Positions 33,301 through 55,090 of a DNA stretch of 64,000 bases are shown here, one piece after another. The DNA is taken from positions 15,066,001 to 15,130,000 of the forward strand of contig NC_087257.1 in assembly GCF_037042905.1 (NCBI RefSeq), in the 5' to 3' direction. The position numbers and the translations under genes are program-made. The DNA is from Lytechinus pictus (lineage: Eukaryota). The notes below the pieces were generated by a model that was given only the letters and a program-made list of their open reading frames with translations, ran no database searches and was not told where the DNA came from. Position 1 is the stretch's first letter; every line of letters starts with the position of its first letter.

Positions 33301-36300
33301 TACAACTTAAGTTGGCATGATAACGTATATCATGTCAACGAAATGAGTATTCAAGTCGACATGGCAAACCAAATATCTCGTCACGTACACTCTCAAAACA
33401 AATCAGTCAAAATGACTAGTTAATCGGGTCAGCTGGATGCAACTTTTATTCTAGTCATATTTGATTAATTTTTAGTCGTATTTTACTAGAACAAACTTAT
33501 TTCTGACGAGAATATACGTCAGAAATGTGACTAGATTTACCAGTTGCACCCAGCTGACTACTGATCTAGGCAATTTGACTGATTGTTTTAAGAGTGTAGA
33601 TGCCACTTTAAACTTCCTTACATGTCGACTAAAAACGTGTAATTATGTAGTTATATGGCCAGTGTCGTTTCTACTACGTAGGCCTATTTCGAAAAGAAAA
33701 TAGCAAGTTCAAATATCTCGTCACGTAAATGGCACTTTAAAGCTTCCGTACATAGAGGATATAAAACACTGTTTAATTGTTTTTTAATAAATTTCTGTTT
33801 AATATATGAATCTTATTTGTATAGAATTTCAAACAACGTTTTTACTGCGTACAAAAATCTTTATTTCTCTCGAGTTGCGTCCAAAGTCGCCAGGCGTACC
33901 TAGGATTTTCTAAGGGGGGGGCAAATTCGTCCGCCAAAAGAAAAATGGTCTTCAACCGCAAGTAAAGGACATTTCGCACCAGAAAAAAAATTGACAAGCA
34001 AAAAAAAAAGGTCTTCAAGTTCAAAGGAGGGGTCCACTTAGCTCGTGAGGGATCAGTTTTGACTCGTCAGGGGGGGCAGACAGTGGCGTAACTACGGGGG
34101 GGCATGGGGGGGCACGTGCCCCCCCAATCGGCTGGCCAAAAAAAAAAAAAAAACGGGGAAAAGGAGAAAACGAGGGAGAAAGGGAAAGAAACGTAGTGGG
34201 GAAAGAAGAAATTATTGTTAATTATAATGTTATATTATGTTATAATTATGTTATGTTATATTACATTTAAAAAAATCATAACTTTATGAAACATAATTTG
34301 CGCAGGGCCTATGTCTCCATTGTTCCTGGTGCTCGCATTGTATGTTTAACAAGATATATAATCCTGTTGTACTAAAACCTCCCGTTTTCAAGTCAATATA
34401 CACCAAATATATTTCCTCGCACTTCGAATTATTATTGTTTATGTAGTGACATATGCTTCTATTTCATGACTACTTAAAGTGATTGCCCCATTTTAAGGTC
34501 TTAATATAAACCATTTCCTGTCCGTGCTTACGTTCGCATTCGAGGATTGGTGAGATATGTCTGTTCTTCATGAATTCCCAAAATCAGTCGTTAAAATGTC
34601 CCTTTTTCTGATCTGAATATCAAAAATTTTCAGCTTGCGCTTCGCGCTCGTATCATTTGGTTAGTGAGATGCGTATATGATAATGACTACAAAAAGTGCT
34701 TCATGTGTCATTTACATGTAATTCTAACAAGATCAGCATGCGTTTGGCACTCGCATTAGATGACTATGGTGAGATATGTGCTCTTAATGGATTCCTTAAA
34801 AAAATAGTCCTTATATCCCTGTTTTGGGTCAATGATATGCAAAAATTTAAGCTTGCGCTTCGCGCTCACATATTTTTGTTAGTGAAATACGTATGATCTT
34901 CGTGAATTCCTACAAACAAGCCTTAAAATGTCCCTCTTCAGGTCTGAATTTCCTAAATTTTCAGCTCGCGCTTCGCGCTCGCAATATTTGATTAGTGAGA
35001 TGCGTATGTTAACCATGATTACAATGATTAAAAAAAGTGCTTCATGTGTTTAGATGTATATTATTCTAACAAAATCAGCAAGAGATTGGCACTCACAATA
35101 GATGACTATGGCGAGATATGTATACTCTTAATGGATTCCTAAAATATAGTCCTTAAAATGTCCCTGTTTGGGGTCAATATATACAAAAATGTCAGCTCGC
35201 GCTTCGCGCTCGCATGGTTTGTTTAGCGAGACAGGTATGTATTATGATTACAAGAATTTGCTTATAATGTCCTTTTTAGGTCTGAATTTCAAAAAAATTC
35301 AGCTCGCGCTTCGCGCTCGCATGATGTGATCAGTGAGATACATATCCGTTTAATGACACTGTCCTAAAAATGTCTCTATTATGTCAGTATACCTGGCAAC
35401 TGAGCGCACTTTAAGTGACTCAAAATTTTTGCTGGTGCCCCCCCCCCCCCCCCAATGCCGTGACCCACGGTACGCCACTGGGGGCAGAGATACGTCCCTT
35501 GCATGTGTTGTGACTCGTCAGGGGGGCAGTCTGCCCCCCCCCCTTATTTGTACGCTAATGGCTGAATCCCTTTATAATACTCTTTATTTCTCCCTTTACT
35601 CCCCGTTTTCATCACACTAAATGTCAATGGGTAGTGATCGCCCCACCCTAGTCGATTTCAGGGTATTTTTGTAGGGTGAGGGCAAGAACAGCAAATCTAT
35701 TTGAAATTATTTTATATTTTGTTTGTAATTATTTTCATGAGCATTGTATTCTGATTTCCATGTACACTGGATTCTTCATTCTTGGGACTGTTTTTCATCG
35801 TTTTTTTTTTCTCTCGATTCAATAAATACTAAATTCTACTGGCACTACGAAATAAAATTACAGGAATATCAGTTTCCAGACCTCTCTTTTCTATACTCTT
35901 CTATATTTTTCCTCTCTATATTTCTTCCCCTTTTCTTCTCTTTTCTCCTATTTCTCTATCTCTCTGTCTCTCTTCTCTTCGGTAAAAAATGGTATTTTCC
36001 CTGCCCCCTGAGGTGCCGCCCCATCAAAACTATCAAATTAATACTAAATATCAGTACCTATACATGAAGGAACAGGTCCATCCCATGATGCATCTGAATT
36101 CATGACAATACAGAGTGGGGCATTATGGGTAAGATTGAAACCTTGATCGCACTCAAAATCGCATCTAGAATCCTTGAGTCTCGAGCAAATCCCTTTAATT
36201 CTACCGTTGTTAGGAGGAGTTAGAAGTGGACATCGCAGAACTAGATTTAAAAGAAAATAAACAAAAAAGACTTATTCATATATCATAAGAATAAATGCTT

Positions 36301-39300
36301 GTTAATATGGCTCTTAAAAATAACGGTCCCAGTCAAATCTAATAAATTCAGATGAGTAATCGATGATACGTATGGGTAATGGGTTAATGGGTCGTATCTC
36401 TTTAGCTGATTCAGCCACTACATCACCAAATTGATGGTTTCACAAATTCCAATGAAACATAATAAAATCTCAACCAAAGTCTTGTAGCCTATAATCCTAG
36501 ATAATTTTGGTTTTCATCCAAGATGTGAATTCGAAATTAATAAAAGAGAATTACCACTTTCTAGTATCAAATATTACAGATGACGTTTTGAACTTTCGCT
36601 CTGAAATTAGGAAAATTTACTATCTCGTAAATTGATTATTCTTCTTTCGATTTCCAAAGGCAGGCAATCAATCGAAACGAACAAAACTTAAACAACGAGG
36701 GTGCAGCACTGGTGGACCAGAAGGGGGGGGGGGTCGAAAAACCCAGGAAATGCCTTCAAACATATTACCCGATGACCCTTGAACTCAGGTTGCCAATTTA
36801 CTCACCGCTTATAGTAAAGGTTACGATACATTCTGCCGTATTTCCCGATCCATCAGTGGCTGTATACACGATAGTGTGATTTCCTTCTGAAAATATTGAT
36901 CCGGACGAACCGCCCGATACTCCGCTAATAAATTAAATAAAACATATTGTATTCGTTGTAACAACAGGATAACCGCAATAAAACTACAAACAGTTCCTTC
37001 CCAATATTATGGATGAAAGACTCTTGAATCTCCCCCTTCTCTCTCTCCCTCCCACTCCCTCTACATCCATCTCTATTTCTCTAACTCCCACCCCTCTTTA
37101 TTTCCCCCGCTTTCCCTTCTCTATCCATAATGAGTAAAAAAAATGATGGGGGCACATCATGGCATATGTGAGAAAAATTCTAAATAGTCGCGAGCTAGCG
37201 AAAAAAAGTCTTTTTGTGAAAGAATATTACATAATATACAACCACAGATAGTATGTGTAACCATTTTCCTTCCCTTTTCTGTCCATTTCTCCTTTTTGTT
37301 TAGGTCGTGGGACTTTTTTTTTGGGGGGGCGAACCCTTCAATACTCCATCTGTATGCTAGTGTCTGGGAAAGAGGTGTACTTTGTTCGAAAAATGTAACA
37401 CAAACCAGGGGTGAAGTTACAATAGGTTTGCCCCTGTGATTTTGAATAAGTGAAAATATATCATAGAGGAGGAAAATTCAAATTCAAATTCAAATTCAAT
37501 TCGGTTTTATTAAGCAATACTCATCAAAAAGTCCGAGGACTAACAATGTGAGTTTACATTTTAAAAAATACATAACAAAGAAATAAATAAATGCATAACA
37601 TGCAGTGACCATTAAAGAAGAAAAAAATATACATTATGTTTAAAATGCAATAATAGTATAAAAAAAGAAGAAGAAGGAGGAGTTGCATGTAATAAGACAG
37701 ATTTAATTTGTATATATAAAAAAAGCAGGTGAGGAGCAAGAAAGGGGAGCAAGAATGGCAAGAGTGAGCATGTGAAAAGGTGAGAGTAGAGAGTGGTGTA
37801 GCAAAAGATAAAGAGGGAAAAAAGGAATGAAGGAGGAAAACAAGAAAGACCCACAAGTAAACAATAAATTGCAGATTAAAAACATATCCTTAAAAATAAG
37901 AAAACAGGAAAAACAGGAAGAAAGAAGAAAAGGTGTATAAAAAGAGATGCAGAGCTTTGTTGCATAAAGTAAATATTATGGTAACTTTGCCATCCAATGG
38001 TAACTACTATGGTAACGCTGATCAACAGCCAATCCAAATGCATGGCAAAGTTACCATAATGGCAACTCTTATGCAACGGGGCCCAGGTCTGGTTATTATG
38101 TATAACCATTAATCTTTATTTAATTTAGAAAAAATGATATGCCACCTAAATACCATCATACTCTGCCGTCCCTTTGGCGTACAAAAATCTTTGATAACTT
38201 TTAGTATCCTATTTCCCTATAACGACTTCTGCAATTTGAACTTTAAAAACGTTTCCTCATTTTCTTTTTTCTTCAAGTTGTAGTCTACACAGAGTGAGAC
38301 CTCAGTCATTATTTTTTACTCGTTTCTCACACTAAGCATAGTAATGCCCGTTTATATTAGGTCTACGATAGGTTATCTGCCCGTAGGATGATAATTAGAA
38401 AAGAATGGCTAACGGTGTTCGTACGATTTTCGTACTGATTCACCATCATCGTAGGGTCTATCGTTTTGATTGGCGTGGATTTAGATTTGTTTTCAAAATC
38501 TTAAAATCGTATCACTTTAATAAAAGTGAGAGACATCTTATGATCAGCTCACGGTAATTTTACGGAAAGAGCAGGGACATCGTACGATCTCCATATTCAG
38601 TCATCTACGGTGCCCAGCACAAAAATCGCACGATGGCCGTAAAGCCCCTTTCACAATTGACGTACGACCTGTTTACGACCGCCTGCAACAGATTTTTCTT
38701 GTTGTTGCACGATCGATCTCTTGGTGTCTTGCGAGCACTCGCAGTGGTTGTAGACGAACGCACGAATTTGAGGTGGTCGGAGGTGGTCGTGACTGGTCGC
38801 ATCTGAATCTGAACATGTTCAAAATCCAAACGCGATCAAATACGATTGGTTTACTCGCATCAGGTCGTACCATCGGTCGGGCGATCATCGTGTGAGTGTT
38901 GTTCAACGTTGTACGACTTGGTGCGAGAGGTGACACAACTACGTATAGTCGCATTTAGTCGACTGGAGGTCGTACAACACTTGCACATGCGCTAGATACC
39001 TACAGAGACCAGTCTTGCGACTGGTTGCGATAATATAAGACTGTTGCAAGACCGATCGAAATTACGGCTTACAACATTCCACTACCGTTGCATTCGCATG
39101 TATGCGACCGTACAGCCCCTTTCACAATTGACATCCGACCAGTTTACGACCGCCTGCAACAGTTTTTTTCTGCTGTTGCACGATCGATCTCTTGGTGACT
39201 TGCGAGCACTCGCAGTCGTTGTAGACGGTCGCACGAACTCGAGGTGGTCGTGACTGGTCACATCTGAACTTTGAACATGTTCAAAATCCGAACGCGATCA

Positions 39301-42300
39301 AATACGACCGATTCACTCGCATCAGCTCGTATCCGGGGTCATACCATCGGTCGGGCGATCATCGTGGGAGTGTTGTTCAACGTTGCACGACTTGGTGCGA
39401 GAGGTGGCACAACTAAGTAGTCGCATTTACTCGACTGGAGGTCGTACAACACTTGCACATGTGCTAGCGACCTACATGTACAGAGACCTGTCTTGCGACT
39501 GGGTGCGATAATATGATGTGCCATAAGACTGTTGCAAGACCGATCGCAACGGCTTACAACATTGCACTACCGTTGTGTGCGACCGTTCCCCTCGCAATCC
39601 CTCGTGCAACACTCGCATGTGATCGCACGAGCACAATAGGATCATAATCGACTTACTCGTGCAACGGGTTTTACTGGTTGTTTTTGTTGTACGACAGCTG
39701 TTGCAACTGTGAAAGCCTATGTGCGATATTATGAGATGACTGGCGATTGATGCCTGTTGCAGCCTGTCGCACGACCAAAAGGTCGCAAGTGGTCGTACGT
39801 CAATTGTGAAAGGGGCTTAAATAAGGTTAAAAAGACAAATCGTAGCCAACTACATTGTCACAAAAATCTTAAACTAATCCATCGTACGATGATCGTAGCA
39901 AATGTAAACGAGGCATTAGGCCTATAATATACTGAGCATTATAGTACTTTATTGCTTAAGCCCCTTTCACAATTGTTGCCAAACAGACTACAACGGCTTG
40001 CGACTCGAAATTTTTCCCGTTGTACGACTCGTTGTAGCCGTTGTACCACTTATTGTACGATCCAGATGCGACAAAATGGTCGCATCTTGGTCGGGAAAAA
40101 AAACCGTGCTGCTCCGATATTTTGAGCGACTGACGCGATGACAAATAATTGCACGACAGGCAGTACGAGTGTTGTGCGACTTTGCACGCACTCGTAAGAC
40201 CCCGAACGAGTGTTGCACGAGTATTTTCATGTCGTACGATGATGCATCCTGTCGTACGAGTCCGTTGTACCACCCTAAGACTATTGGAAGACCTGTCTTG
40301 CCCCCTTTGCAACGTTGTACGATTTTTTTTCACCCCCAATATAAGCTCGAGAACTCCTGAGCTTTCATCCCAAATGTCTGGACCATCCACTGTAAACATG
40401 GCTGCTGCTCAACCAATAGCTCCTGGGAGGCTCTTGCATTTGCTAAGTCTGAGAAGGCAAATCCAAAACGTTCAAGACAGACATGTCATATTGATGGCCT
40501 TACTCATCCGTAGACGTCAAAGACATGCAAGGCAAAGAAGAAGGTGATGGGTCAAACCCAGGATTGAGAGACGTGTGCTGTTTGGACAGTATGATAATCT
40601 GATGACGGAGTTGCAGAGAGAATGTCAGGGTGACTTCCTGAACTACATGAGGATGCCACCAGAAACGTTCCTTGAACTGTTGCAGCGCATCACTCCGAGG
40701 ATAGAGAAGTCCTATCGCTACCGGCAGCCACTGGATCCTGGGCTCAAACTGGCCATCACCTTGAGATATCTTGCGACCGGCAACAGCTACAAAACCATGC
40801 AGTATGCCTTCCGTGTTGCCCATAATACCATCTCTCTGTTTATACCAGAGGTGTGCCAGGCCATCATCAATGAATACCAAGATGAAGTATTTTCCTGTCC
40901 AACTACCCCAGATGAATGGAGAGAAGTGGCACGGACTTACGCTGACAGATGGAACTTTCATCATGTCTGCGGAGCCTTGGACGGAAAACACGTGGCCATC
41001 ATAAATACACCAGGCTCTGGTACGATCTACTACAACTACAAGGGTTTCTACAGCCTCATCCTCTTGGCCCTAGTTGATGGCAATTACAAGTTCCTCTGGG
41101 CTGACGTTGGTAATCCCGGTTCATCATCGGATGCCCAGGTCTTCAACCACAGCCCGCTGAGACGTGGACTGGAGAATGGTACTCTTGGCCTGCCAGATCC
41201 AGAGCCCCTGCCAGATGATGACCGAGACACCCCTTACTTCTTAATTGGGGACGACGCCTTCACTCTCAGGACATGGATGCAGAAGCCGTACTCCAACCGT
41301 GAGCAGACCGACGAGGAGAGAATCTTCAACTACCGTCTCTCGAGGGCTCGCCGTGTGGTGGAGAACAGCTTTGGCATCCTTGCCCATCGCTGGAGATGCT
41401 TGTTGAGTACCCTACAGCTTGATCCAGAAAAGGCCAGGACAGTCATTATGGCCTGCATGTGCCTCCACAACCTAATGAGAGATCGTTTTCCTGGGCTTCA
41501 GAACATTGACGTTGACCATGAAGATGAGTTGGGCAACCACATCCCTGGGGCATGGAGAAACGCAGCAGTTCTGCACGATGTTGAACGAGTTGGCGGAGGC
41601 TACCAGGCAAACAAAGAGGGCAAGAAGCTGAGAACTTACCTGAAGCACTACTACAACAGTCCAGTTGGAAGCCTGCCCTGGCAACAACACATGATATAGA
41701 CTGCCACTTGGCGCACTACTTGGGATACAGCACAGACTCTGTCATAAAAATGGCATGTAAACTTCGATCATGATTTTGTGGAATGAATCATTTCAAAGTA
41801 GAAATGAATGACCATGTCAACAGTTATTTTAAACATACATTACTTTTACATCGAAAGGTAGTTTGAAATTTAAAAAGTTAACTCTCCTTAATAACATGTG
41901 TTCGAAATAAAATAATGAAGGAGAACATGTTTGAAAAAATGTGATTTATGAGAATAAAAAAGATGTACAGATATAACATATTGTGGCGTAACCGGGCCCT
42001 GTCGGGGGTAGCGTTCTGCCGTCTCGCAGTCTCCAGAACCCGGTCCACGCTTCTACTCACTTTTATATCTCTTTTTGGGCAGGTTCGTTCACAAAAGTAT
42101 ATTGTGCAACGTGGTACAATCTCTCGCTCCTCTGAAATACACCGAAACACCCGCTCACTCACCCTAAATCATGCAAATGAAGCAACTTGGGAGATATTCA
42201 GTATACAGTTCAACTTGATTTATTCGGAGCTTACATCTTACAACCGCACGCCACCGCAGCTCCCAGCGAACTGACGTACTTCTCCAATAATCGCAAAGCA

Positions 42301-45300
42301 TATCACAACTAAATCATCGCCCTCTACGATTAAACTATGAAATACATCTTAAAGGTATAACTCATTATGCTACACAGCCCCTCCCCAAGTCTGGGCTGTC
42401 CTCGGACCAGGTATATTAACAATAAAACATAAAAATGAATTTCTTTAAATGTTATCTCGCTCTTCCAAAGAAGAAAATAAAACATTAAGACATCGTTAAA
42501 AGTATACAGGTATATACATTGGCATAGTACATAAAGGGAGTACCGTTCTTACATTAACAACCAAAACAATCTATATACAGAAATAGATAGAAAGAGCAAA
42601 CAGAGTTGTATTGAGATCAGAAAATGTCAAGATGAGAATGACATAAGAAAGGTTAGAAAAGAGGAAAAGGAAAACATGGAAGCAAAAATATAAAGCATAC
42701 ATCAATTAGGCATAAAACAACATTTTGAATACAAAATCAAATGCATCAGAGTCTTTTACTGTTTCTGGCACAAAGTTATAGCGAAAGTTATGTCCAATAT
42801 CTATTCTGCGGATTGAAGTGCTAGAGGATTTCTTCTCGGGGGTTTCTTCAAGGCGCATGTCTAGAACTACTTTTCATCATCTCGATCTCTCTCTATAAAG
42901 ACTTCTTTGGAGGCCAAGGCGTTACCCTGTCGTAACAATCAGCGGATGTGCATCCAACGCAATTCCTTCGAACTATCTATCTGAAGAACAACATCACATG
43001 CCAGGTTACATTCCGACCTTGGTCACACTCCTACTTCCTGTAGAGTATGTCTTGCTTCATCTCTAGCTGTGCATCCTCCAATAGGACTTCTCCACACTAG
43101 ACTTTGAAGCCACCGTTGACCAATCGGGCCGGTCGACTGACTGATGCTCTGCTTCCAAGATCTACCTGATCGAAGGTTCTTTCTGTTGCATGGTATCTGC
43201 TCATTGCTGATGTCAAGTTCCACGGCAACCACCCTTGCGTCTGCAAAGATCCAACCAAGTGCCCGATGATCCGTCCTGATCTCCGCCCATAGAAGTTCTG
43301 TTGCAGCTCCGAAATACTACCATGGCCCATGACTCCTTTTGAGCCCCATAGTAGTTTTTTCTCTGCTTTCTGAATGCAGTACCCCACTAGCATAGGATAT
43401 GACTTGCTCCTTCCCAACATAGGACAGCTCCAGTTCCCTCGTTGCTAGTATCTGCATATCCAACAAGTACTTCTCTTCGACGTTCAGAGATCCCCATCTC
43501 CATGCTGCACTTATCCTGCAAGGAATTTCAGATCCATTCTTCATAGCCACTCGTCGTAGGCGCTATACATTTACATGTATAGGCGCTATCCACGCTGTCG
43601 TCTACACACCGACTCAATAGGCGCTATTCACCCACGTGTATAGGCGCTATTTCCGCCACAACACTCAAGGCGCTATTCACCAACGTGTATATAGGCGCTA
43701 TCTCCGCCACACACACCCAAGGCGCCATTCACCAACGTGTGTAGGCGCTATCTCCGCCACACACACCCAAGGCGCTATTCACCAACGTGCATAGGCGCTA
43801 CCTCCGCCACGCACACTCAAGGCGCTATTCACCAACGTGCATGGGCGCTACCTCCGCCACACACACCCAGGGCGCTATTCACCAACGTGTGTAGGCACTA
43901 TCTCCGCCACACACACCCAGGGCGCTATTCACCAACGTGTGTAGGTACTATCTCCGCCACACACACCCAGGGCGCTATTCACCAACGTGTGTAGGCACTA
44001 TCTCCGCCACACACACTCAATACGCCATTCACCAACGTGTGTAGGCACTATCTCCGCCACACACACCCAGGGCGCTATTCACCAACGTGTGTAGGCACTA
44101 TCTCCGCCACACACACTCAATACGCCATTCACCAACGTGTGTAGGCACTATCTCCGCCACACACACCCAGGGCGCTATTCACCAACGTGTGTAGGCTCTA
44201 TCTCCGCCACACACACCCAGGGCGCTATTCACCAACGTGTGTAGGCACTATCTCCGCCACACACACCCAGGGCGCTATTCACCAACGTGTGTAGGCACTA
44301 TCTCCGCCACACACATCCAGGGCGCTGTTCACCAACGTGTGTAGGCACTGTCTTCTTGCCTCTCTCAAGGCTCCCTTCCTCTGCGCTATCCACGCTGTCG
44401 CCAACACATGCACTCCGGGTGCTATTCACCAACGTGCATAGGCGCTCTCTTCTTGCCTCTCTCCAGGCAATCTTCATAGGCCTTATACGTGGCGCTCCCT
44501 GTAATACAGGCGCCTATAAGTTGTCTGAGCTTCCAATACCACGTTGTTCAATCCCACCGCGGCCACCAGTGTGGCGTAACCGGGCCCTGTCGGGGGTAGC
44601 GTTCTGCCGTCTCGCAGTCTCCAGAACCCGGTCCACGCTTCTACTCACTTTTATATCTCTTTTTGGGCAGGTTCGTTCACAAAAGTATATTGTGCAACGT
44701 GGTACAATCTCTCGCTCCTCTGAAATACACCGAAACACCCGCTCACTCACCCTAAATCATGCAAATGAAGCAACTTGGGAGATATTCAGTATACAGTTCA
44801 ACTTGATTTATTCGGAGCTTACATCTTACAACCGCACGCCACCGCAGCTCCCAGCGAACTGACGTACTTCTCCAATAATCGCAAAGCATATCACAACTAA
44901 ATCATCGCCCTCTACGATTAAACTATGAAATACATCTTAAAGGTATAACTCATTATGCTACACAATTTTCTTTTGTCATTAATCATGTTGTTTTAAACAT
45001 GATATATATTTTTCAAAGACATTTTATTAACGATGATTAATTGTATTGACTATGTTAATGTTTAAAATAAAGTTTGAAATAAATGTTCCAAAATGGGTCA
45101 GTTGTAAATTAAATTGAGAGAGTTCATCAAGTAACAATAACAATCCAAACAAAAGTTCACTGTTTATTTTCTTTATTTGACAAGTCTGACAAGTTCAAAT
45201 GGATGATGATTGATGTGACGGCGCTGTTGCTGCCTCCTTGATTTAGTGGAATGAATCATTTCAAAGAAGAAATGAATGATCATGTCAACATTTATTTTAA

Positions 45301-48300
45301 ACAAAAATTTCTTTGACAATGAAATGTTTGAAATAATAAACGTTGATTCTCCTTTAATAGCATGTATTTGAAATATAAAAAAAAGAATATTTTTGAAAAA
45401 AACGTGATTTATGAGAATAAAAAAGATGTACAGATATAAAAAAATTTATATTGTCATTAATCATGTTGTTTTAAAAATTATATATTTTTTCCAAGACATT
45501 TTGTTAACGAAAATGAATTCCATTCACCGAGTAAATGTTTAAAAAAGTTTGAAATAAATGTTCCAAAATAGTCAAATTATAATTTGAGTTGAGAGAGTTC
45601 GTCAAGTAACAATAAAAACAATCCTAACAAAAGTTCACTGTTCATCTTCTTCATCTGACAAGTTCAACTGGGTGATGATTGATGTGTTGGCGCTGTTGCT
45701 GCCTCCTTGCTGCTGCTGCTGAAAGGGGGCCTGCTGTTTTTGCTGGAAGTGGGGGTGCTGCTGCTGGAAGGGGGCACGCTGCTGCTGGAAGGGGGCCTGC
45801 TGCTGGAAGGGGGCCTGTAAATTGGGCTGCTGAAATCCTCCCTGAGGGTTCTGAGGGGTCCAGGTGCTGCTTGGCCCGAGCATCCCAAGGAAGGAAGCAG
45901 GTGGAGCGTCCTGGGTGAAGCCGATCGGCGCTGACTGAGGCCTGAGTGGCTGGATCATCTGGGGAGTGCTGGGGCGAGATACTGGGGTGGTGGAAAGGTG
46001 GTCCGCCCGATCCTGGTAGCGGCTCACCAAGTTGAAAGTGTCCCTGGTGAACTCTCGCCAGAGGGGTCTTGGGAGTGGGCGGACGGCCTGCAGCATCCAT
46101 TCTAGCCAGGCCTGCCTCTCGTCAGCGCCTTGGGTGAGTGCCGCATCCACCTGGCTCCGGATGGCCGTCTGCTCGGTGGATGTTCTGATGAATTCCAGGA
46201 GGGCCTTGTCCTCATCGGTGGGCGACCCCCTCTTCTGCCTCTTCTTGGGAGGTGCAGCCCCCTGGCTGGAGACTTGGATGGAGCTGGGTGCTTGGCTGGC
46301 ATCTGGACCCTCCTCATCTAAACCCTCTTCGTCGGAGGCGGCTTCAGTAATTCGGCCACTGAGGTGGCCCAGTTGGCAGCCCTGTGACCGATGGACTATG
46401 TGCTTCGTCAGAAAACCAAGGTTGTTATTGACCCATCTCTGCCCGGGGGTAAGGACGATGGCCTTCTGACCATTCTTCTTTCCAGCGGTCTTCATCTTCC
46501 CCAGGATGGTCCTCTGGCCTTTATACCATGTCGGCCACTGAAAATATACAAAATGTAGAAGCAAGAAATTAGTCAACATCCAAAAAATTGGCATGTTTAA
46601 CTAATAAACATCATCAATAAATCGGAATGTGCATATTTTTCAGCTACTACTTACCGGTGACTCCCAGCTTTTCCGCCATCTCCATGTACTTGCGCTCCTT
46701 CTTCTTAGAGTTTTTGAAGTCCACCTTGCTCTTGTCGTAGATGAACTCATTGTCAGCGAAAAACTCGGCCAGCTCCTGCTCCATGGCTTTCCTGATACCG
46801 CAGGTAGCATGGCCATCTGTCACGTTGTTCTCATCACTGGCGGCGGCTGGTGGATCTTGGCCCCCTTCCTGCAGCATTTCATCATCCTCGGTCTGGGCTT
46901 CACCAAATTCATCACCCTCATCACCAGCTATGACAGAAGCAGTAGCTTTCTCCTCGGCCACGGGTATAGGCTGGGGCCCTTCCTCCTCATCAGGCTGATT
47001 TTTCCTCTTTTTCCTTGACTTCTTTGGGGCCATGCCGATGCTTGTATTTTGGTTGTGTCTTGTTCACTGTAGCAGCGTCTCGTCAGGCATCAGCGGTTGT
47101 AATGAAGAAAGTCGCATCGCGTGTCGTATTTATAGGCCAACACCTCGCGCGACAGGTGGTGCGGTGTGTCGCACAATGGGTCGTAGCCTTGTACGATCGG
47201 TTGTAGTAGTCGTACAACGGGTCGCTAGGTCGCGCGACATATGGCGCTACAAAACGGATATGTCGTGCGACTTGGTCGCATCATCGTTCAACCGTTGAAG
47301 CCGTTGTACGACTGTTGCACCCGGAAACATGAAAATAATCGCACGATTACGTCTCACGACTGTTGTATCCTGGTGCAGTGGTCGTTCACCTCTCGTACGA
47401 TTTTATATATTGCTTGCGACTCAAAGACAACACTTCTACAACAGGACGGAAAAAATATTTTCGAAAAAAAAATTATCGCACGAGTGAGGCGCCAATTGTG
47501 AAAGGGGCTTTACACGGTAACCGAAGTATCGGTGTCATCTGTTACCGTCGGAGTCTTCCAAGATACAAATCTCGATGTGGTCGAGGTCGGAAAATCACCG
47601 ATGTCACTCGGACAATAGGTAAAGGTCGGCGCCGTTGTATCTACTAAATGACAAATAGATGTTCACTATAACATGTCATTATATCATAGCAAAAGTGAAA
47701 TGCTATTGTATTAAATAAACCAAGACAAGATTCTTATTTTGGAAATTGCAATTATGAATTATTTTCTTCTGGCAGCGTAATCCTTTTATTTATGGTATGT
47801 CTGCCCAGCACTTTCTGGCGAAAATGTATTTAATGAAGCATTATTATTTATGTTTAGTTCCTATACCAAGCATTCATTATCTTCTTGTGAAATTATGTAG
47901 CATTATGTTGCTGTCCATGGGAATATTATCCTATATGGTGAAATGAATAAAACAATTTTTCAGAATATGGAAAATACGTGTTTAAGGTGCTTTTCGAGAC
48001 CCCATGGGGGGGGGGGCATGGTATCCACTCGTCAATGGAAGTGCCCCCCCCCCGGGCCGGTGGTTCGAGTCCCACCGAGAAACACACTTCCCTCTTTATC
48101 CACGGTGTTTAGTTAACCGGGTTCCCGGTATAGGAGGTGACACAAAAGCCAATACTGTAGTTGGTCTAGTTGGGCAGTCAAATATATTGCTGTACACACA
48201 CGTGACCAAGAAAAAAGAGTTTTTCTCTGTGTGCAAAATAACCCCCTAAACAAGTTTTTCGCGGGCTTCGTTATATTTACACATTTTGGCCCCTAAACAA

Positions 48301-51300
48301 GATGTCGCCAAAATATGACCTCGGGGTAAAAGCTTGGGGGAAAAACATACCCTAAACACGTTTGTCTAGTCTTTAAAAAAAAGCTTTGGGGGGGAAAACA
48401 TACCCTAAATACGTTTGAACCGCGATTGACCAGTCTTTCAAAACCACCCTTTTTCTTGAAAGTCTGTGTTTTTGATACCCTTAACGAGTCCACGCGCGGA
48501 CCGCGTCCAAAACTGAAAAAACACCCCTTTAAATGCGTTTTTTTTTTGGCCACGCGTGTGTACAGCAATATATTTGACTGCCCCCCCCCCCGGGTTATTG
48601 TATGAAATTTACATTGTTTAACAGTGTAAACAGCCATGCTTGAATTATTGAAGACTATGGCCCATATTCGGAAGTCAGGTTTAAGTTAGACCACGGAATA
48701 AACCAGTGCTAAAATTATGATAAGCAAACAATGTCAAGATTTGTTTGTATTGCACGTGCACCTCTTATAGTTATAAGGATTTTTTTCTCCATGCTTTAAT
48801 GACAAAGAAAAACATTTTATCAATCTTATTGTGAATTGCTGAAGTGTCAAATTCTGTCATAAACCAAACCTGTATCGTTAGAGTTTTGTGTCACAATTGG
48901 CTATCCATAGTCAAACCCCAAATTTAGACCAGGGTTTAAATTAATCGTGAGTTCATAATACGGACCGTATAGGCCCGTATTCTGAACCCGGGTTGAATTT
49001 AAACTTTGTGTATTAAAGATTTTAAACATTTGTTTAAACTGTTAAACAACTGCTTTAAAATGCATTTAGTGAACAGCGCTTATTAACAATTTTAAACAGA
49101 CTTTCTACTCAACTGTGACGGAATATTAGTATTATTGTTATCATTATCATTAATTATTCACGAACCTGGGGCGACCTGTGGTGGTGGGTGACTTGGGACT
49201 GGTGTCCGGCGTCTTCTTCTCCTCCTCCTCCAAGCATCTGGAATTATTTAAGAATATAAAGAAAAAACATGATTTTATCTGTTGGGGTTGCATGCAGTTC
49301 CAGTATATAGATCATAAAATATAATTGCTATAAAATAAAAATCACAAATGCAGAAAATAATTTATGTTAACTAATTATACTTTCGATATATTTTACTTGA
49401 AAATAAATCGTATTTCCCCTGAATTTTCAACGATGGGTGTTGAATATCTATTCCACATGGTTGATTAAAAAGGATGAAATGTAAAAACTTATACATAATT
49501 ATGTTAGGTCATTACTAATTCAAATAATTGTATGGTCCTGTGGTCGAGTAACCTAAGGTAGGCCTACCTGATCAGGGTTAGATGTTCGATACCAAGCACG
49601 GCGCTTAATTATGCCATCGAGCGTAATACCTATATTATGTGCTTTTCGGTTTAATTGTTTATCAACTAGTGAAATGCTGAAGACACTAATTAAACTTCAT
49701 AATAGAACTTGTGCATTTTTTATGTCAACCAGTCTTCATGAAAGGAGCTCTGGTATATTATAGCTGATCAAAGATAAATTAAAAGCCCTTTCTAATCAGG
49801 GGGTGTTTCGCCACGATTATTTTTCGCCGACAACAGTCAGTGCTGACTATTTGAATCAGCGGAGAAAATTGGATAGGTCGGAATGTAAAGGACCACCGAC
49901 GAATTTCCAGAAATTTGTTTAGGATTTTCTCCAACAAATCTTCATGAAATGAAATTTAGTCGGAAACAGTGAAATGTAGTCGGAGATGATGAATTTGTCG
50001 GAGAAAATGAAATTAGTCGGAGAAAACCTCCGACTATATTTTCATAACCCCCCCCCCCGGCCCCCCTCCCTGAACTACTATTTTTTGTATATCACTTTTA
50101 AGAAAAAAAAAAGTGGATTTACTGTATAATAAATCAACTCTTTCAAACGTGATATCACACAAGTTGTACGCACCAGTGGCGGATCTAGGGGGGGGGGGGG
50201 GGTTAAACCCAAAACTCGGGTCCCTAATAATCAATTTTAAAAAGGAGTTTGGGGTCAAACTCCAACACCCCTTCCCTGTTTACAAGGGTCGCGCAAGCAG
50301 AACAGTGTCTGATCTACGGGGGGAGGTGAGATGCATTACGTCGCACCTCATCGTACTTGGGTCAAACATACTTAGCAAACCCCCGGCCCCCCACTCAGAG
50401 TTATTTAGGGTACGCCTGCATGTGCTCGTTCCCTCCCTTTGAAGGCACTCCCTATCTCATGTCTGCCAAATTTTCTGAACACCCCGTTCGCGGGCTTTCC
50501 CTGACTTGGAGACCCCCCTTGATCCGGAACACTGCTCAATGACCCCCCCCCTATCTCAGGTGACCTCTCATTCCAACCCCCCTATCTCGGGACAGACACC
50601 CCCCCCCCCCCCCACCCCCTTCATCTCAGGTAAGCTGTCAGTACAATGATGGAGGACAAGCTTTCAAAACTAGCAGGAATTTCAGAAATTTGATCCCGGG
50701 ATTTGATCAATTTTTCTATGATATTCAAAATATTTTATAACCCCCTTTCTAAATTTCCCAGGAGTCGAAAAATTAAGAGAGAGAGAGAACACCCACTTTT
50801 TAAAGAAATATCCGAGTGAAAAGTCAAATACACCCCCTTTTTTACAATTTGCGGGCAGGACTTGTCCCGCGAAAAAGCACCCCTTTACCGGACATTTTGG
50901 GAACACGCATGCGAGTCCCTCCGACCCCGGAGTGGGGGGGGGGGGGAGCAAACCCCCCCCCCCCCTCCCCCTCTTAGCAGAAAGCTAGATCCGCCACTGG
51001 GCGCAAGGCGTGAACAGGGAGCTTCACAGACAAACAAGACATTCTCGACATTTTGTGTTTTTTTTCTCTGAACTATGAGATCATTACCAGACATTCACTT
51101 CCGAAATATATTGATGAAATGGTTTCTTGTGACTAGGTTTCGTTCAAAGTTCTTATAACCCAATAAGCATTTCCTCGTATAGTATAAAATTAGCTCGTAT
51201 AAAGTTCTCTTTTTTATTCATTTTTTGCTCTAGAAATGATCAAAGGAACATGATATATCGTTATAACGGAATATAATACACCGTTATAATTTATCATGCT

Positions 51301-52637
51301 CATCAATCTCAATGTGTAAATCATCAATTAAAGTAAGAGTAATGTTAAAAATCAAGAAGAAGAAGGAGACTAATAATAAGAAGAAGAAGAATTAAGAAGA
51401 AGAAGAAATAAGAAGAAGAAGAATATATTTCTGAGGTTTACTATTTAATTATAAAGATAAATAACTGATATTTTGCAAGCTGGAACCCCGTACTGTTTTA
51501 TTATATTCTCCAGATCAGCAGTAACTCGCTTTCTCTCTTACTCACCACGTGTTTGTCTGTACGAAAGCTGTTGTTTGACGATTCTTTTATTCAAATGTTA
51601 ACATAACTTTTTAATTACTGGAAGCTGTTTTCCTGATACAAGTCAACATAAAATTACAATTTATGAATCAAGTCTAGAAGATAGATCATAAGTTAAATAT
51701 TGAATGTAAAAACGTTTGCTTTCTTTCAATTGTCAAAACCTAAAAATACGAGCATATGCCCAGATCTATAATCGAGAATGATTCAGAATTCATGATGATG
51801 TCGCCTTTAAACCACGGGACTTTCCATTACAAAACGAAAAGGACACTACCAACTTTCATTTTGCTTCTGTAAAAACAGGAAAGTAATCGCATGTGATGCC
51901 CTCAATGAAAAACTAACCCAATGTTTTTGTCTCGCCTGCTTTGCATAGCATAGACTTTAAGCGCCGCTTTTCTGACGGTGACGGCGGTGGCGCGTCGTCG
52001 ACATTGAAATCTTTACCGAGGTTAAGTTTGTTTTTTAAATGCCGTCATAACTTTAGAAAGTATATAGACTTAGTTAATGAAAATTAGACATAACGGTAAT
52101 CATTTATCACTGATCATTCTGCATGTGATTTAGGTTACATGATGAAGGTCAAATGTCATTAAGGGTCAATGAAGTTTGACCATGTTGGGGGTATTTCTGA
52201 GATGTCATCATAACTAATAAAGTTTATGGATCTAGTTCATGACACTTGGACATGAAGGGTAAGCAAGTATCATTGATCATTTTGCATGAGTTCTGGTCAA
52301 TGAAACGTTGACGGTGTTGTGGTATTAACACTGAAATCTGAACCATGTTCATGATGGTTAAGTTTTCAAAAAGGATTTTCATAAGGGTAAGCAATTATAA
52401 AGAGGTAACTTCAATTTTACCCGTTTTACTGACTATAACCGGTGATGTATCTCAGAATAGGTTCGATTAGGCATCTTTGTATTTAAAGTAAAGTAAGTAA
52501 ATGTAATATATGGATGATTGCTTTACATAGTTGTGAAATAATTTTTTAAAGGATTATTAATTACTTTTCTTACCAGTATCTCCGCAGAAGAGAAAGAAAC
52601 AAACAATGAGCAACACGCAATTATCAAAGATCAACAT
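14760..52637 (-). CDS. Adhesion GPCR (~872 aa): signal peptide, W-R8, HYR, Sushi, HRM, GAIN/GPS, secretin-family 7TM
   Basis: 15 coding exons: 52637-52574, 49237-49166, 47640-47514, 36924-36806, 36240-36058, 32949-32833, 32130-32030, 31060-30935, 20327-19991, 19427-19237, 18593-18417, 17560-17451, 16897-16635, 16019-15953, 15324-14760. They sum to 2619 nt, all GT-AG, with consistent phases. Confidence 0.87.
15953..16019 (-). CDS. aGPCR exon 14: TM4/ECL2
   Basis: GCPLVIVCITVAVDLNAYRNPDY. Confidence 0.85.
16635..16897 (-). CDS. aGPCR exon 13: TM2-TM4
   Basis: IMINLSSALL...CTVIAIMLHYFSLAAVAWMGVEA...FAWG. Confidence 0.93.
17451..17560 (-). CDS. aGPCR exon 12: TM1
   Basis: LDIISILGCSVSIICLIITIGVLAGI. 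Confidence 0.9.
18417..18593 (-). CDS. aGPCR exon 11: GPS motif
   Basis: CVYW...GVWSQEGC...CHCTHL|TSFAVLL canonical autoproteolysis site. Confidence 0.95.
19237..19427 (-). CDS. aGPCR exon 10: GAIN domain
   Basis: VFVLDSLKLF...LASPVLSITI...IKNLSDPVVLHF. Confidence 0.88.
19816..19990. mobile_element. Palindromic MITE (CWG-flanked) at aGPCR exon 9 donor
   Basis: TIR GTGGGTGTTTCATAAAGCTGTTCGTAA; relatives at 58211-58372 and 58410-58597. Confidence 0.88.
19991..20327 (-). CDS. aGPCR exon 9: GAIN domain
   Basis: KVLALVDTTL...SILSSVNAF...NVVVAAV...SVFLPEEIL. Confidence 0.85.
20721..21556 (+). mobile_element. HINE/pearl/Tsp-like element with ~160-bp internal tandem cores
   Basis: Sits in a T-run; subterminal IR GTCTCACCTGCAT/ATGCATGTGAGAC; CATAACT at 20825, 20993, 21154, 21313; relatives at 51924-52330 and 12720-13157. 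Confidence 0.7.
21954..26005 (+). CDS. Secreted echinoidin-like C-type lectin, copy A (177 aa)
   Basis: Exons 21954-22093, 23503-23656, 25766-26005. Signal peptide, CGCPPLWT...NCYRYF, GHLVSIHS, WIGL, QPN, WND, FICKIPQW. Confidence 0.92.
24280..25251. mobile_element. hAT-type non-autonomous element in lectin A intron 2
   Basis: TIR CAGTGGCGTA; 8-bp TSD TATGTCCA; internal GCGAGCGCGAAGCGCGAGCTG repeats. Confidence 0.9.
28011..29448 (+). CDS. Secreted echinoidin-like C-type lectin, copy B (184 aa)
   Basis: Exons 28011-28150, 28381-28555, 29209-29448. Same motifs as copy A plus a 7-aa longer loop (CGEETSSSSV). Confidence 0.92.
30935..31060 (-). CDS. aGPCR exon 8: start of GAIN region
   Basis: NGSNANSNKTQPSTIDALISNPDNIQLDFVASLLEDTSLTPK; phase 0-0. 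Confidence 0.72.
32030..32130 (-). CDS. aGPCR exon 7: HRM C-half
   Basis: NVSRLCYYNESAGASWLDPLYQQC. Confidence 0.78.
32833..32949 (-). CDS. aGPCR exon 6: hormone-receptor motif (HRM) N-half
   Basis: LQCEED...LIFNQTEVGKRANAPIIC. Confidence 0.75.
33388..33596. mobile_element. TA-flanked MITE
   Basis: TIR CACTCT(C/T)AAAACAA(A)TCAGTCAAA; TA TSD; empty site visible in the neighbouring repeat at 33711-33750. Confidence 0.8.
34081..35480. mobile_element. hAT-type non-autonomous element (same family as 24280-25251, inverted), nested in another MITE
   Basis: TIR CAGTGGCGTA; 8-bp TSD GGGGCAGA. Confidence 0.9.
36058..36240 (-). CDS. aGPCR exon 5: Sushi/CCP domain
   Basis: VLRCPLLTPPNNGRI..IC...SRCDFECDQGFNL...C...SWDGPVPSCI. 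Confidence 0.87.
36806..36924 (-). CDS. aGPCR exon 4: HYR domain C-half
   Basis: GGSSGSIFSEGNHTIVYTATDGSGNTAECIVTFTIS. Confidence 0.87.
38344..39916. mobile_element. Older TIR element hosting the Harbinger MITE
   Basis: Imperfect TIR ATGCC(T)CGTTTA(T/C)ATT...CTACGAT, flanked by TA; CGTACGAT-rich. Confidence 0.55.
38643..39817. mobile_element. Non-autonomous Harbinger element (MITE) with duplicated left arm
   Basis: 27-bp perfect TIR AGCCCCTTTCACAATTGACGTACGACC; TAA TSD; second internal left end at 39114. Confidence 0.92.
40398..41699 (+). CDS. Harbinger DDE transposase (HARBI1-like family) with in-frame TGA at 40545-40547
   Basis: GALDGKH, YYNYKGFYS, IGDDAF, FNYRLSRARRVVENSFGIL..RWR, LHN motifs. 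The N-terminus reads RRR*WVKPRI in frame with the upstream ATGs (40374/40398). Confidence 0.92.
41982..42374 (-). repeat. 3' LTR
   Basis: Direct repeat of 44570-44962; TG...CA; adjacent PPT. Confidence 0.93.
43220..43490 (-). pseudogene. Decayed Gypsy pol RNase H fragment
   Basis: Across frameshifts: YLLD/ADTSNEGTGAVL/GKEQVISYAS/KAEKNY..AQKE.WAMV/FYGRR/IRTDHRALGWIF. Confidence 0.72.
43618..44350. repeat. 50-bp tandem array (~14-15 units; degenerate flanks to ~43555 and ~44445)
   Basis: Unit TAGGCACTATCTCCGCCACACACACCCAGGGCGCTATTCACCAACGTGTG recurs at exact 50-nt spacing (43691...44341). Confidence 0.95.
44550..44568 (-). promoter_or_regulatory. Primer binding site, tRNA-Leu type
   Basis: TGGTGGCCGCGGTGGGATT is complementary to a tRNA 3' end AATCCCACCGC(G/T)GCCACCA, matching the eukaryotic tRNA-Leu 3' end as recalled. 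Confidence 0.8.
44570..44962 (-). repeat. 5' LTR
   Basis: Direct repeat of 41982-42374; followed on - by C + TGG-starting PBS. Confidence 0.93.
45635..47033 (-). CDS. Harbinger ORF2, MADF/Myb-SANT-like DNA-binding protein (2 exons, apparent frameshift at the junction)
   Basis: Exon 47033-46655 (NLS-like MAPKKSRKKRK; ELAEFFADNEFIYDKSKVDFKNSKKKE) and exon 46537-45635 (WYKGQRT.LGK; Q/P-rich tail); GTAAGT...CTAAT...TTTCAG intron. Confidence 0.8.
47514..47640 (-). CDS. aGPCR exon 3: HYR domain N-half
   Basis: DTTAPTFTYCPSDI...FVSWKTPTVTDDTDTSVTV. Confidence 0.85.
48170..48595. mobile_element. MITE, same family as 2104-2535
   Basis: TIR GGGCAGTCAAATATATTGCTGTACACAC. Confidence 0.78.
49166..49237 (-). 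CDS. aGPCR exon 2: DAWRRRRRRRRTPVPSHPPPQVAP
   Basis: ttccag|AT...CCA G|gttcg; GC-rich 72-nt island, phase 1-1. Confidence 0.7.
51355..51422. repeat. (AAG)n microsatellite
   Basis: Directly visible. Confidence 0.85.
51924..52330 (+). mobile_element. HINE-like element, 3'-truncated
   Basis: Same 5' end and core repeat as 20721-21556. Confidence 0.6.
52574..52637 (-). CDS. aGPCR exon 1: signal peptide
   Basis: MLIFDNCVLLIVCFFLFCGDT G|gtaag; an upstream acceptor at 52652 implies a further 5'UTR exon. Confidence 0.7.
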
Positions 52638-52805
52638 CTTCAGGTTTATCGCTGAAGGGAAAATAAGAAATGAAAAAAGTTTGTGAATTTGAATCTAAAT
52701 GGGGTTAGATTCGTCTTAATTTATTGATAATTTCTGTTTTAAGGTCCGCTGATACTGGTGATGTTAAGGATGGGTGATGGAAATGTTTCTGATGATGATG
52801 ATGAT

Positions 52806-52973
52806 NNNNNNNNNNNNNNNNNNNNNNNNNNNNNNNNNNNNNNNNNNNNNNNNNNNNNNNNNNNNNNNNNNNNNNNNNNNNNNNNNNNNNNNNNNNNNNN
52901 NNNNNNNNNNNNNNNNNNNNNNNNNNNNNNNNNNNNNNNNNNNNNNNNNNNNNNNNNNNNNNNNNNNNNNNNN
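52806..52973. other. Assembly gap or masked N run
   Basis: N run flanked by (GAT)n. Confidence 0.98.
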
Positions 52974-54933: not shown

Positions 54934-55090
54934 GNNNNNNNNNNNNNNNNNNNNNNNNNNNNNNNNNNNNNNNNNNNNNNNNNNNNNNNNNNNNNNNNNN
55001 NNNNNNNNNNNNNNNNNNNNNNNNNNNNNNNNNNNNNNNNNNNNNNNNNNNNNNNNNNNNNNNNNNNNNNNNNNNNNNNNNNNNNNNNNN
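54934..55090. other. Assembly gap or masked N run
   Basis: N run flanked by purine-rich low complexity. Confidence 0.98.

Follow-up and report, generated by a model that had tools for sequence, protein, structure and literature searches.

What becomes of a gene when a DNA transposon comes to rest inside one of its splice donors and leaves the coding sequence untouched? This question is raised by a 64,000-nucleotide stretch of the sea urchin Lytechinus pictus (hereafter the window; NC_087257.1, positions 15,066,001 to 15,130,000), in which a PIF/Harbinger element occupies the HYR-splitting intron of an adhesion G-protein-coupled receptor (GPCR) gene. The gene lies on chromosome-scale contig C13, and the element stands directly after intron position +4, within the six-nucleotide core of the 5′ splice site. 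The anatomy of the insertion, including its terminal inverted repeats (TIRs), its target-site duplication (TSD), its position in the donor, and its family, can be described with near certainty, whereas impaired splicing at this donor is a prediction, made from the donor sequence, that is held to be rather better than even.

On the minus strand, which is the coding strand of the host gene, the junction reads ...GAT ACT TCG GTT ACC GT/G TAA (the slash marks the exon end), enters the element, which opens with AGCCCCTTTCACAATTG and closes with CAATTGTGAAAGGGGCT, and leaves it again with TAA GCAATAAAG, so that the distal flank on the gene strand is TAA followed by GCAAT. When the element and one copy of the TSD are taken out, the donor reads GT/GTAAGC, whereas with the element it reads GT/GTAAAG (47513-47508); in the wider context, CGT/GTAAGC has become CGT/GTAAAG upon insertion. 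The host GT and the adenines at +3 and +4 are retained, and the G at +5 and the C at +6 have been exchanged for the A and G with which the transposon starts. A preliminary description of this DNA had placed the event at 47508-47520, had called the element a Harbinger, and had held that its excision together with one TTA copy restores GT/GTAAGC, the GT being kept and +5G lost by the insertion. The coordinates are correct to the base, the restored donor can be read in the sequence, and the family assignment is borne out by a DDE_Tnp_4 transposase, the TIRs, and TWA flanks (TAA or TTA). The same description joined the phase-2 donor to the second HYR half-exon at 36924 and expected unspliced read-through to stop immediately. 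Both expectations hold: the first half-exon, when read through, ends at once in GTG TAA, and the junction gives a full HYR reading frame. Moreover, 47514 to 36924 is the best junction, picked unprompted by a spliced-alignment script that tries all GT/AG pairs against orthologous proteins. The intron removed by this junction measures 10.6 kb with the Harbinger, 3,035 nt without it, and 1,857 nt without both the Harbinger and a miniature inverted-repeat transposable element (MITE) of the same family.

The identity of the host gene follows from protein comparisons. The 41-aa first half of the HYR region, searched with HMMER against 1.8 billion representatives, finds a protein of 720 aa that is 78% identical over residues 30-70, and a follow-up protein search returns an 878-aa Strongylocentrotus purpuratus 'adhesion GPCR G2' model (P0088). 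All 15 coding exons examined in the window (15/15) are open and collinear with P0088, in which a Pfam scan places HYR at residues 50-131, GPS at 514-559, and 7tm_2 at 570-810; joined together, they encode an uninterrupted receptor of ~872 aa with 67% identity to P0088 and 93% identity to a partial L. variegatus model. Judged by this collinearity, the host gene and the S. purpuratus 'adhesion GPCR G2' model are orthologues. The first HYR half-exon gives no Pfam match by itself; it aligns to the part of P0088 whose HYR (50-131) corresponds to profile positions 1-81, and the second half-exon corresponds to profile positions 48-81. The introns of the gene are rich in transposable elements and also house nested lectin genes, and a second intron of 10.6 kb occurs elsewhere in the gene.

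The intron that received the element can be traced beyond L. pictus. To judge by these comparisons, it is ancestral and was not made by the element, because two paralogues on the same chromosome (L021 and L022) share a phase-2 intron of ~0.7-0.85 kb at the homologous codon, and because the S. purpuratus orthologue is gap-free at the junction, P0088 reading ...DSSITV/ETSGG... where the window reads ...DTSVTV/GVSGG.... The S. purpuratus protein P0036 is likewise gap-free across the 47514/36924 junction. An orthologue with a different donor, which the preliminary description had named as the observation that would speak against it, was looked for, and the gap-free alignment and the shared phase-2 intron are what was found. 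The donors of the homologous intron in L021 and L022 read TC/GTAAGT and TC/GTACGT, the latter in L022, where the predicted U1 duplex has an energy of -3.4 kcal/mol.

The strength of the altered donor was gauged by U1 duplex energy and by a two-class donor rule, and 14 donors of the gene were examined, 12 of them placed by the splice script and those of exon 1 and exon 2 read directly. Human donors fall largely into an NN//GURAG class (53.6%) and an AG//GUNNN class (45.1%), and -1G and +5G compensate for each other (review, PMC11732430). The present site, GUAAA, fails the NN//GURAG class, which the restored GUAAG meets, and the AG//GUNNN class is unmet both before and after the insertion, the exon ending in CGU. 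Since there is no exonic AG, the donor before the insertion would have leaned on +5G, as members of the NN//GURAG class do. Only the Harbinger-hit donor, one of the 14, has neither -1G nor +5G, all others having one or both. The U1 duplex, already weak at -4.4 kcal/mol for the restored GTAAGC, falls to -2.1 kcal/mol for GTAAAG, the lowest strength among the 14, with the remaining donors ranging from -5.5 to -13.3 kcal/mol; a scoring of both donors had been proposed in the preliminary description, and the insertion donor is the weaker of the two.

The consequences of a poorly used donor would depend on which exons are then joined. Rescue by a cryptic donor was considered and rejected, as no in-phase GT lies within the exon and all downstream GTs lie past the TAA stop. 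Skipping of the 127-nt half-exon alone causes a frameshift, as had been proposed, and by computation reaches a stop after 78 codons. The earlier list of outcomes proves incomplete, however, in that it omitted a double skip of both HYR half-exons, which removes 246 nt in frame, leaves a 790-aa open reading frame (ORF), and, alone among the skips, preserves the receptor. This arrangement is shown by an older L. pictus RefSeq model, the 'uncharacterized protein LOC129274071' (P0100, 238 aa), which was found with the N-terminal 195 residues of P0088. Placed on the window, P0100 comprises a 5′ exon at 54145-54089, exon 1, the upstream W-R8 exon (100% identity), and then the Sushi exon at 36241-36056, with both HYR half-exons omitted.

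Several observations weigh against an effect on splicing. P0100 comes from another assembly of L. pictus, which differs at 4 of ~190 residues and may or may not carry the insertion, and gaps in that assembly or ab initio joining could account for its omission of HYR; the HYR part is also missing from the L. variegatus model, which begins inside the Sushi exon, and poor 5′ annotation may be general in Lytechinus. Sequencing run X8, from organism B, covers no unique intron bin and is in this sense RNA-like. It contains a 260-nt contig of which positions 53-176 match 47517-47640 only, with 52 and 84 unlike bases at the sides. As read from these boundaries, the exon is spliced in, with one end at 47640 and the other no more than 3 nt from 47514, in an animal that may or may not carry the insertion. 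Another donor of the same gene, AAG/GTAAAC, functions without +5G, but it has -1G. Both HYR half-exons are still open, as would be expected whether the insertion is very recent or the exons continue to be used.

These points bear on the possibility that the insertion is real but neutral, GT/GTAAAG with its +3A and +4A being used efficiently through exon definition and nearby enhancers and the 10.6-kb intron being removed normally. Such a reading agrees with the intact exon and whole ORF, with the spliced exon ends in the RNA-like X8 contig, with the presence of another 10.6-kb intron in the gene, and with weak donors being usual at this intron position, as in L022. It sits less easily with a donor that alone among 14 lacks both -1G and +5G, such donors being rare (PMC11732430), and with the one L. 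pictus model that covers the 5′ exons and skips the HYR exons, while the X8 contig would count for it only if that animal carried the insertion. A neutral insertion is considered unlikely, although it is the alternative to be taken most seriously.

The age of the insertion was approached through four sequencing runs with a low share (0.05-0.08), compared over 47000-52700, none of them from the assembled animal. In run X2 (DNA, organism A), a 1,090-nt contig matches 47510-47802 at ~92% and continues with 802 nt unlike the window, its orientation being taken from a strand convention fixed by three ~2.09-kb Harbinger contigs. In run X4 (DNA, organism A, from another study), a 240-nt contig matches 47510-47682 at ~92% and continues with at least 28 nt that are unlike the window in either orientation. 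Both matches break off precisely at the outer base of the TSD, 47510, and the Harbinger end itself is represented in these runs at >99%, so that a TIR present at the site would have aligned. Read from where the matches end, the contigs look like the unoccupied site in organism A, and because the match includes TTA, the unoccupied donor would be GTAAG. The flanking intron differs by ~8%, which points to a sister species as organism A, probably L. variegatus. On this reading, the contigs show the insertion to be younger than the split from organism A; polymorphism within L. pictus does not follow. An empty site outside this individual, as the preliminary description had recommended seeking, is thus seen in the DNA of organism A, with contigs that break at the TSD. 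An empty-site haplotig sought in the assembly was not found, the exon and its flank being unique in the genome and the 135-bp stretch between the two Harbinger-family elements revealing no empty-site copy.

The same contigs bear on the suspicion that the junction is an assembly artefact in which a Harbinger copy was misplaced. The element is multi-copy, and all the runs compared come from animals other than the assembled one, which leaves room for such an error; the clean TIRs with the same TAA at both ends, the restoration of a consensus-class donor at a conserved intron position upon removal, and empty-site contigs that break exactly at the TSD are, however, features that a misjoin would not yield together, and an artefact is accordingly regarded as having a negligible chance of being correct.

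Comparison of the window with the organism-A contigs also reveals four differences within the exon (47553, 47557, 47594, and 47607), all of which change an amino acid by codon reading (T to I, K to E, D to E, and S to N); at position 47607, the S. purpuratus residue is shared by the other organisms.

A further alternative is that Lytechinus can already do without the 5′ module or is losing it, with the HYR exons as an optional cassette or the locus breaking up, so that an insertion would be tolerated. The amino-acid-altering nature of 4/4 exon differences, the many transposable elements and nested lectin genes in the introns, the split of the L. pictus locus into a 238-aa and a 'LOW QUALITY' 555-aa model, and the start of the L. 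variegatus model in the Sushi exon could all be understood in this way. Against it stand 15 open coding exons collinear with an 878-aa S. purpuratus protein, the presence of the exon in an RNA-like contig, and the same split HYR in the paralogues; this alternative is considered improbable.

The explanation that accommodates the most evidence, namely a Harbinger in the HYR-splitting donor with impaired splicing as its consequence, is regarded as moderately probable as a whole. A recently transposed, autonomous-type PIF/Harbinger took as its target the TAA that forms intron positions +2 to +4, and a nested long terminal repeat (LTR) element enlarged it afterwards. The resulting allele, without -1G and +5G, would present a donor that is poorly recognised; part of normal splicing would probably persist, and the likeliest stable product of its failure would be a receptor that lacks the HYR domain through the in-frame double skip. 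Unproductive forms, arising by the 127-nt skip, by read-through into TAA, or by polyadenylation at the AATAAA signals of the Harbinger, would be degraded or truncated; premature polyadenylation is possible because the element carries a sense-oriented ORF with AATAAA at 45296-45028. The allele would be revertible in principle, given that the family is active and that Harbinger excision is usually precise. A bolder extension would make an active Harbinger that targets G/C-TWA-G/C a recurrent, excision-reversible mutagen of GTAAG donors in L. pictus, with the present locus as a segregating HYR-less receptor allele and thus a natural domain-deletion polymorphism in a fast-evolving family; it is offered as speculation and is considered unlikely.

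Whether splice donors are natural targets of this family, as the preliminary description supposed, can be examined across the genome. The TIR AGCCCCTTTCACAATTG has 1,726 perfect genome matches, against 0 for a reversed control, and 1,177 of the 1,726 have a TWA flank, most of the others being the internal third TIR of a MITE. These matches correspond to ~590 elements, mostly MITEs of ~1.17 kb. A G precedes TAA in 235/653 termini (36%, against a background of 18%), and a C precedes TTA, which is equivalent to a G after TAA, in 216/524 (41%, against 14%); the GTAAG context itself occurs in 3/9 sampled copies having matching TSDs. The family thus prefers G/C on either side of TWA, and GTAAG is perhaps favoured ~4-6 fold over the average TAA. 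By a rough estimate, GTAAG donors make up on the order of one-thousandth of all TWA sites, so that ~590 insertions would be expected to strike a donor once or a few times with no special mechanism at work. The supposition therefore stands in modest form, GTAAG being favoured through its G/C flanks, but one donor hit in ~590 insertions is about what chance would give, and the strong claim of a special attraction to donors is rejected, the family favouring G/C flanks as such and not GTAAG in particular.

Exact TWA duplication throughout the family is likewise ruled out, the middle base of the two flanks being unlike (TTA...TAA or TAA...TTA) in 7/16 sampled MITEs (L038-L053). Genome-wide, TAA and TTA termini number 653 and 524 (binomial p 2e-4), where equal numbers would be expected under exact duplication. 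Unequal ends possibly arise from donor-site overhangs that are carried over with the element and settled separately at each end.

The element resembles known members of PIF/Harbinger, such as PIF/mPing of plants and Harbinger3_DR of zebrafish, in its DDE_Tnp_4 transposase, its short TIRs, its T-W-A flanks, the coexistence of autonomous copies with numerous derived MITEs, a slightly extended target preference, and, more tentatively, a second ORF that may be Myb/SANT (MADF)-like. It differs from them in belonging to an echinoid family with the TIR AGCCCCTTTCACAATTG, in the nested LTR element of the window copy, and in the often unequal middle base of TWA, unlike the exact duplication of textbooks. 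Transposon insertions at or beside splice sites are known to cause exon skipping or cryptic splicing, as in the maize Ds and dSpm alleles and in disease-causing human Alu and L1 insertions. The present case is like these in that a splice signal is altered with the coding sequence untouched and that skipping, use of cryptic sites, and truncation are the expected outcomes; it is unlike them in that the element lies inside the 6-nt donor core, that GTAA is kept since the target and TSD are TAA, that only +5 and +6 are replaced, and that the effect is here a predicted one. Introner-like elements are similar in that the end of a DNA transposon coincides with a splice site, whereas the intron described here is ancestral. 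A literature search turned up no earlier description of a Harbinger within a splice donor, which is not proof of absence.

The insertion is a tidy example of a known and ordinary kind of mutation, and its general interest is modest. Its value lies in being a base-exact natural experiment on the logic of the 5′ splice site, in which only +5 and +6 have changed, in a donor without exonic AG and in a laboratory sea urchin amenable to breeding and genotyping. Should the allele segregate, a comparison of carriers with non-carriers would reveal how far an echinoderm donor of this kind depends on +5G and whether the receptor can do without its HYR domain. A Harbinger family that is probably mobile also matters for L. 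pictus inbred lines and transgenics.

Coordinates of the insertion, of the element, and of the neighbouring exons (window positions).
Feature	Position	Strand	Remarks
Present 5′ splice site, GTAAAG	47508-47513	-	G+1 from host; +2 to +4 (TAA) are a TSD copy; +5/+6 (AG) are the first two TIR bases
TSD copy adjoining exon	47510-47512		TTA on +, TAA on gene strand; X2/X4 contig matches end at its outer base
TSD, distal copy	39956-39958		TTA on +, TAA on gene strand
First HYR half-exon	47514-47640	-	127 nt; phase 1 in, phase 2 out; 78-82% identity to S. purpuratus orthologues (residues 30-70 / 49-81)
Second HYR half-exon	36806-36924	-	119 nt; phase 2 in, phase 1 out; PF02494 profile 48-81 of 81, E 9.2e-8
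Upstream W-R8 exon (DAW-R8-proline-rich stretch)	49166-49237	-	Phase 1 to phase 1
Sushi exon	36058-36240	-	W-R8 exon joined straight to it in older L. pictus RefSeq model
PIF/Harbinger element	39959-47509		7,551 bp: ~4.57-kb canonical element plus nested LTR element
TIR, exon-proximal	47493-47509		17 nt, perfect
TIR, distal	39959-39975		17/17 nt match to other end
Transposase ORF, DDE_Tnp_4	40575-41699	+ (antisense to host gene)	PF13359, 108.5 bits, E 3.2e-31, profile 1-158 of 158
Second Harbinger ORF region	45638-47063	- (host-gene sense)	Open stretches 47063-46650 and 46600-45638; AATAAA signals beyond, at 45296-45028
Nested LTR-type element	41982-44962		2,981 bp; 100% identical direct repeats; 50-bp satellite of 12-17 units; between the two Harbinger ORFs
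MITE of same Harbinger family, same intron	38643-39817		1,175 bp; own TSD (TAA on +)

The start of the second Harbinger ORF resembles PF10545 (MADF/Myb-SANT-like) over the first 37 of 84 profile positions, with a score of 20.8 bits (E 5.2e-4) that lies under the 22-bit cut-off, and an intron likely follows. The nested LTR-type element is private to the window copy. In other long Harbinger copies the left and right arms abut, and the canonical length of the element is therefore taken as ~4.57 kb. At least 27 other long copies occur genome-wide with 96-99% identity, by which measure the family is young; it probably retains its mobility in L. pictus. The window Harbinger end has counterparts at >99% in contigs of organisms A and B (runs X1, X2, and X8), compared with ~92% for the adjacent unique intron. 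On these matches, the family is common to L. pictus and to organisms A and B, and the window copy is close to the common sequence of the family.

The common MITE of ~1.17 kb contains a third, internal TIR ~472 bp from one end, which is flanked by TAC and not by TWA and is absent in forms of ~700 bp; the longer form looks like a partial tandem dimer. The Harbinger and the MITE of the window are 135 bp apart, and in this interval positions 39841-39918 hold a repeat of ~80 bp with at least 29 genome copies, probably a remnant of another MITE family.

In the host gene, a stretch of DAW followed by seven or eight arginines and a proline-rich sequence, located 3′ of the signal peptide, is kept both in P0088 and in P0027, a Lytechinus paralogue whose architecture is quite different, and it looks like a shared N-terminal module. 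The gene, which spans 14760-54145, is fragmented in RefSeq: the 238-aa 5′ model P0100 carries a foreign C-terminus, the 3′ part is represented by the 'LOW QUALITY' 555-aa model P0090, and the L. variegatus model that begins within the Sushi exon is P0089. Runs of N lie at 52806-52973 and 54935-55090, upstream of and around the 5′ exons.

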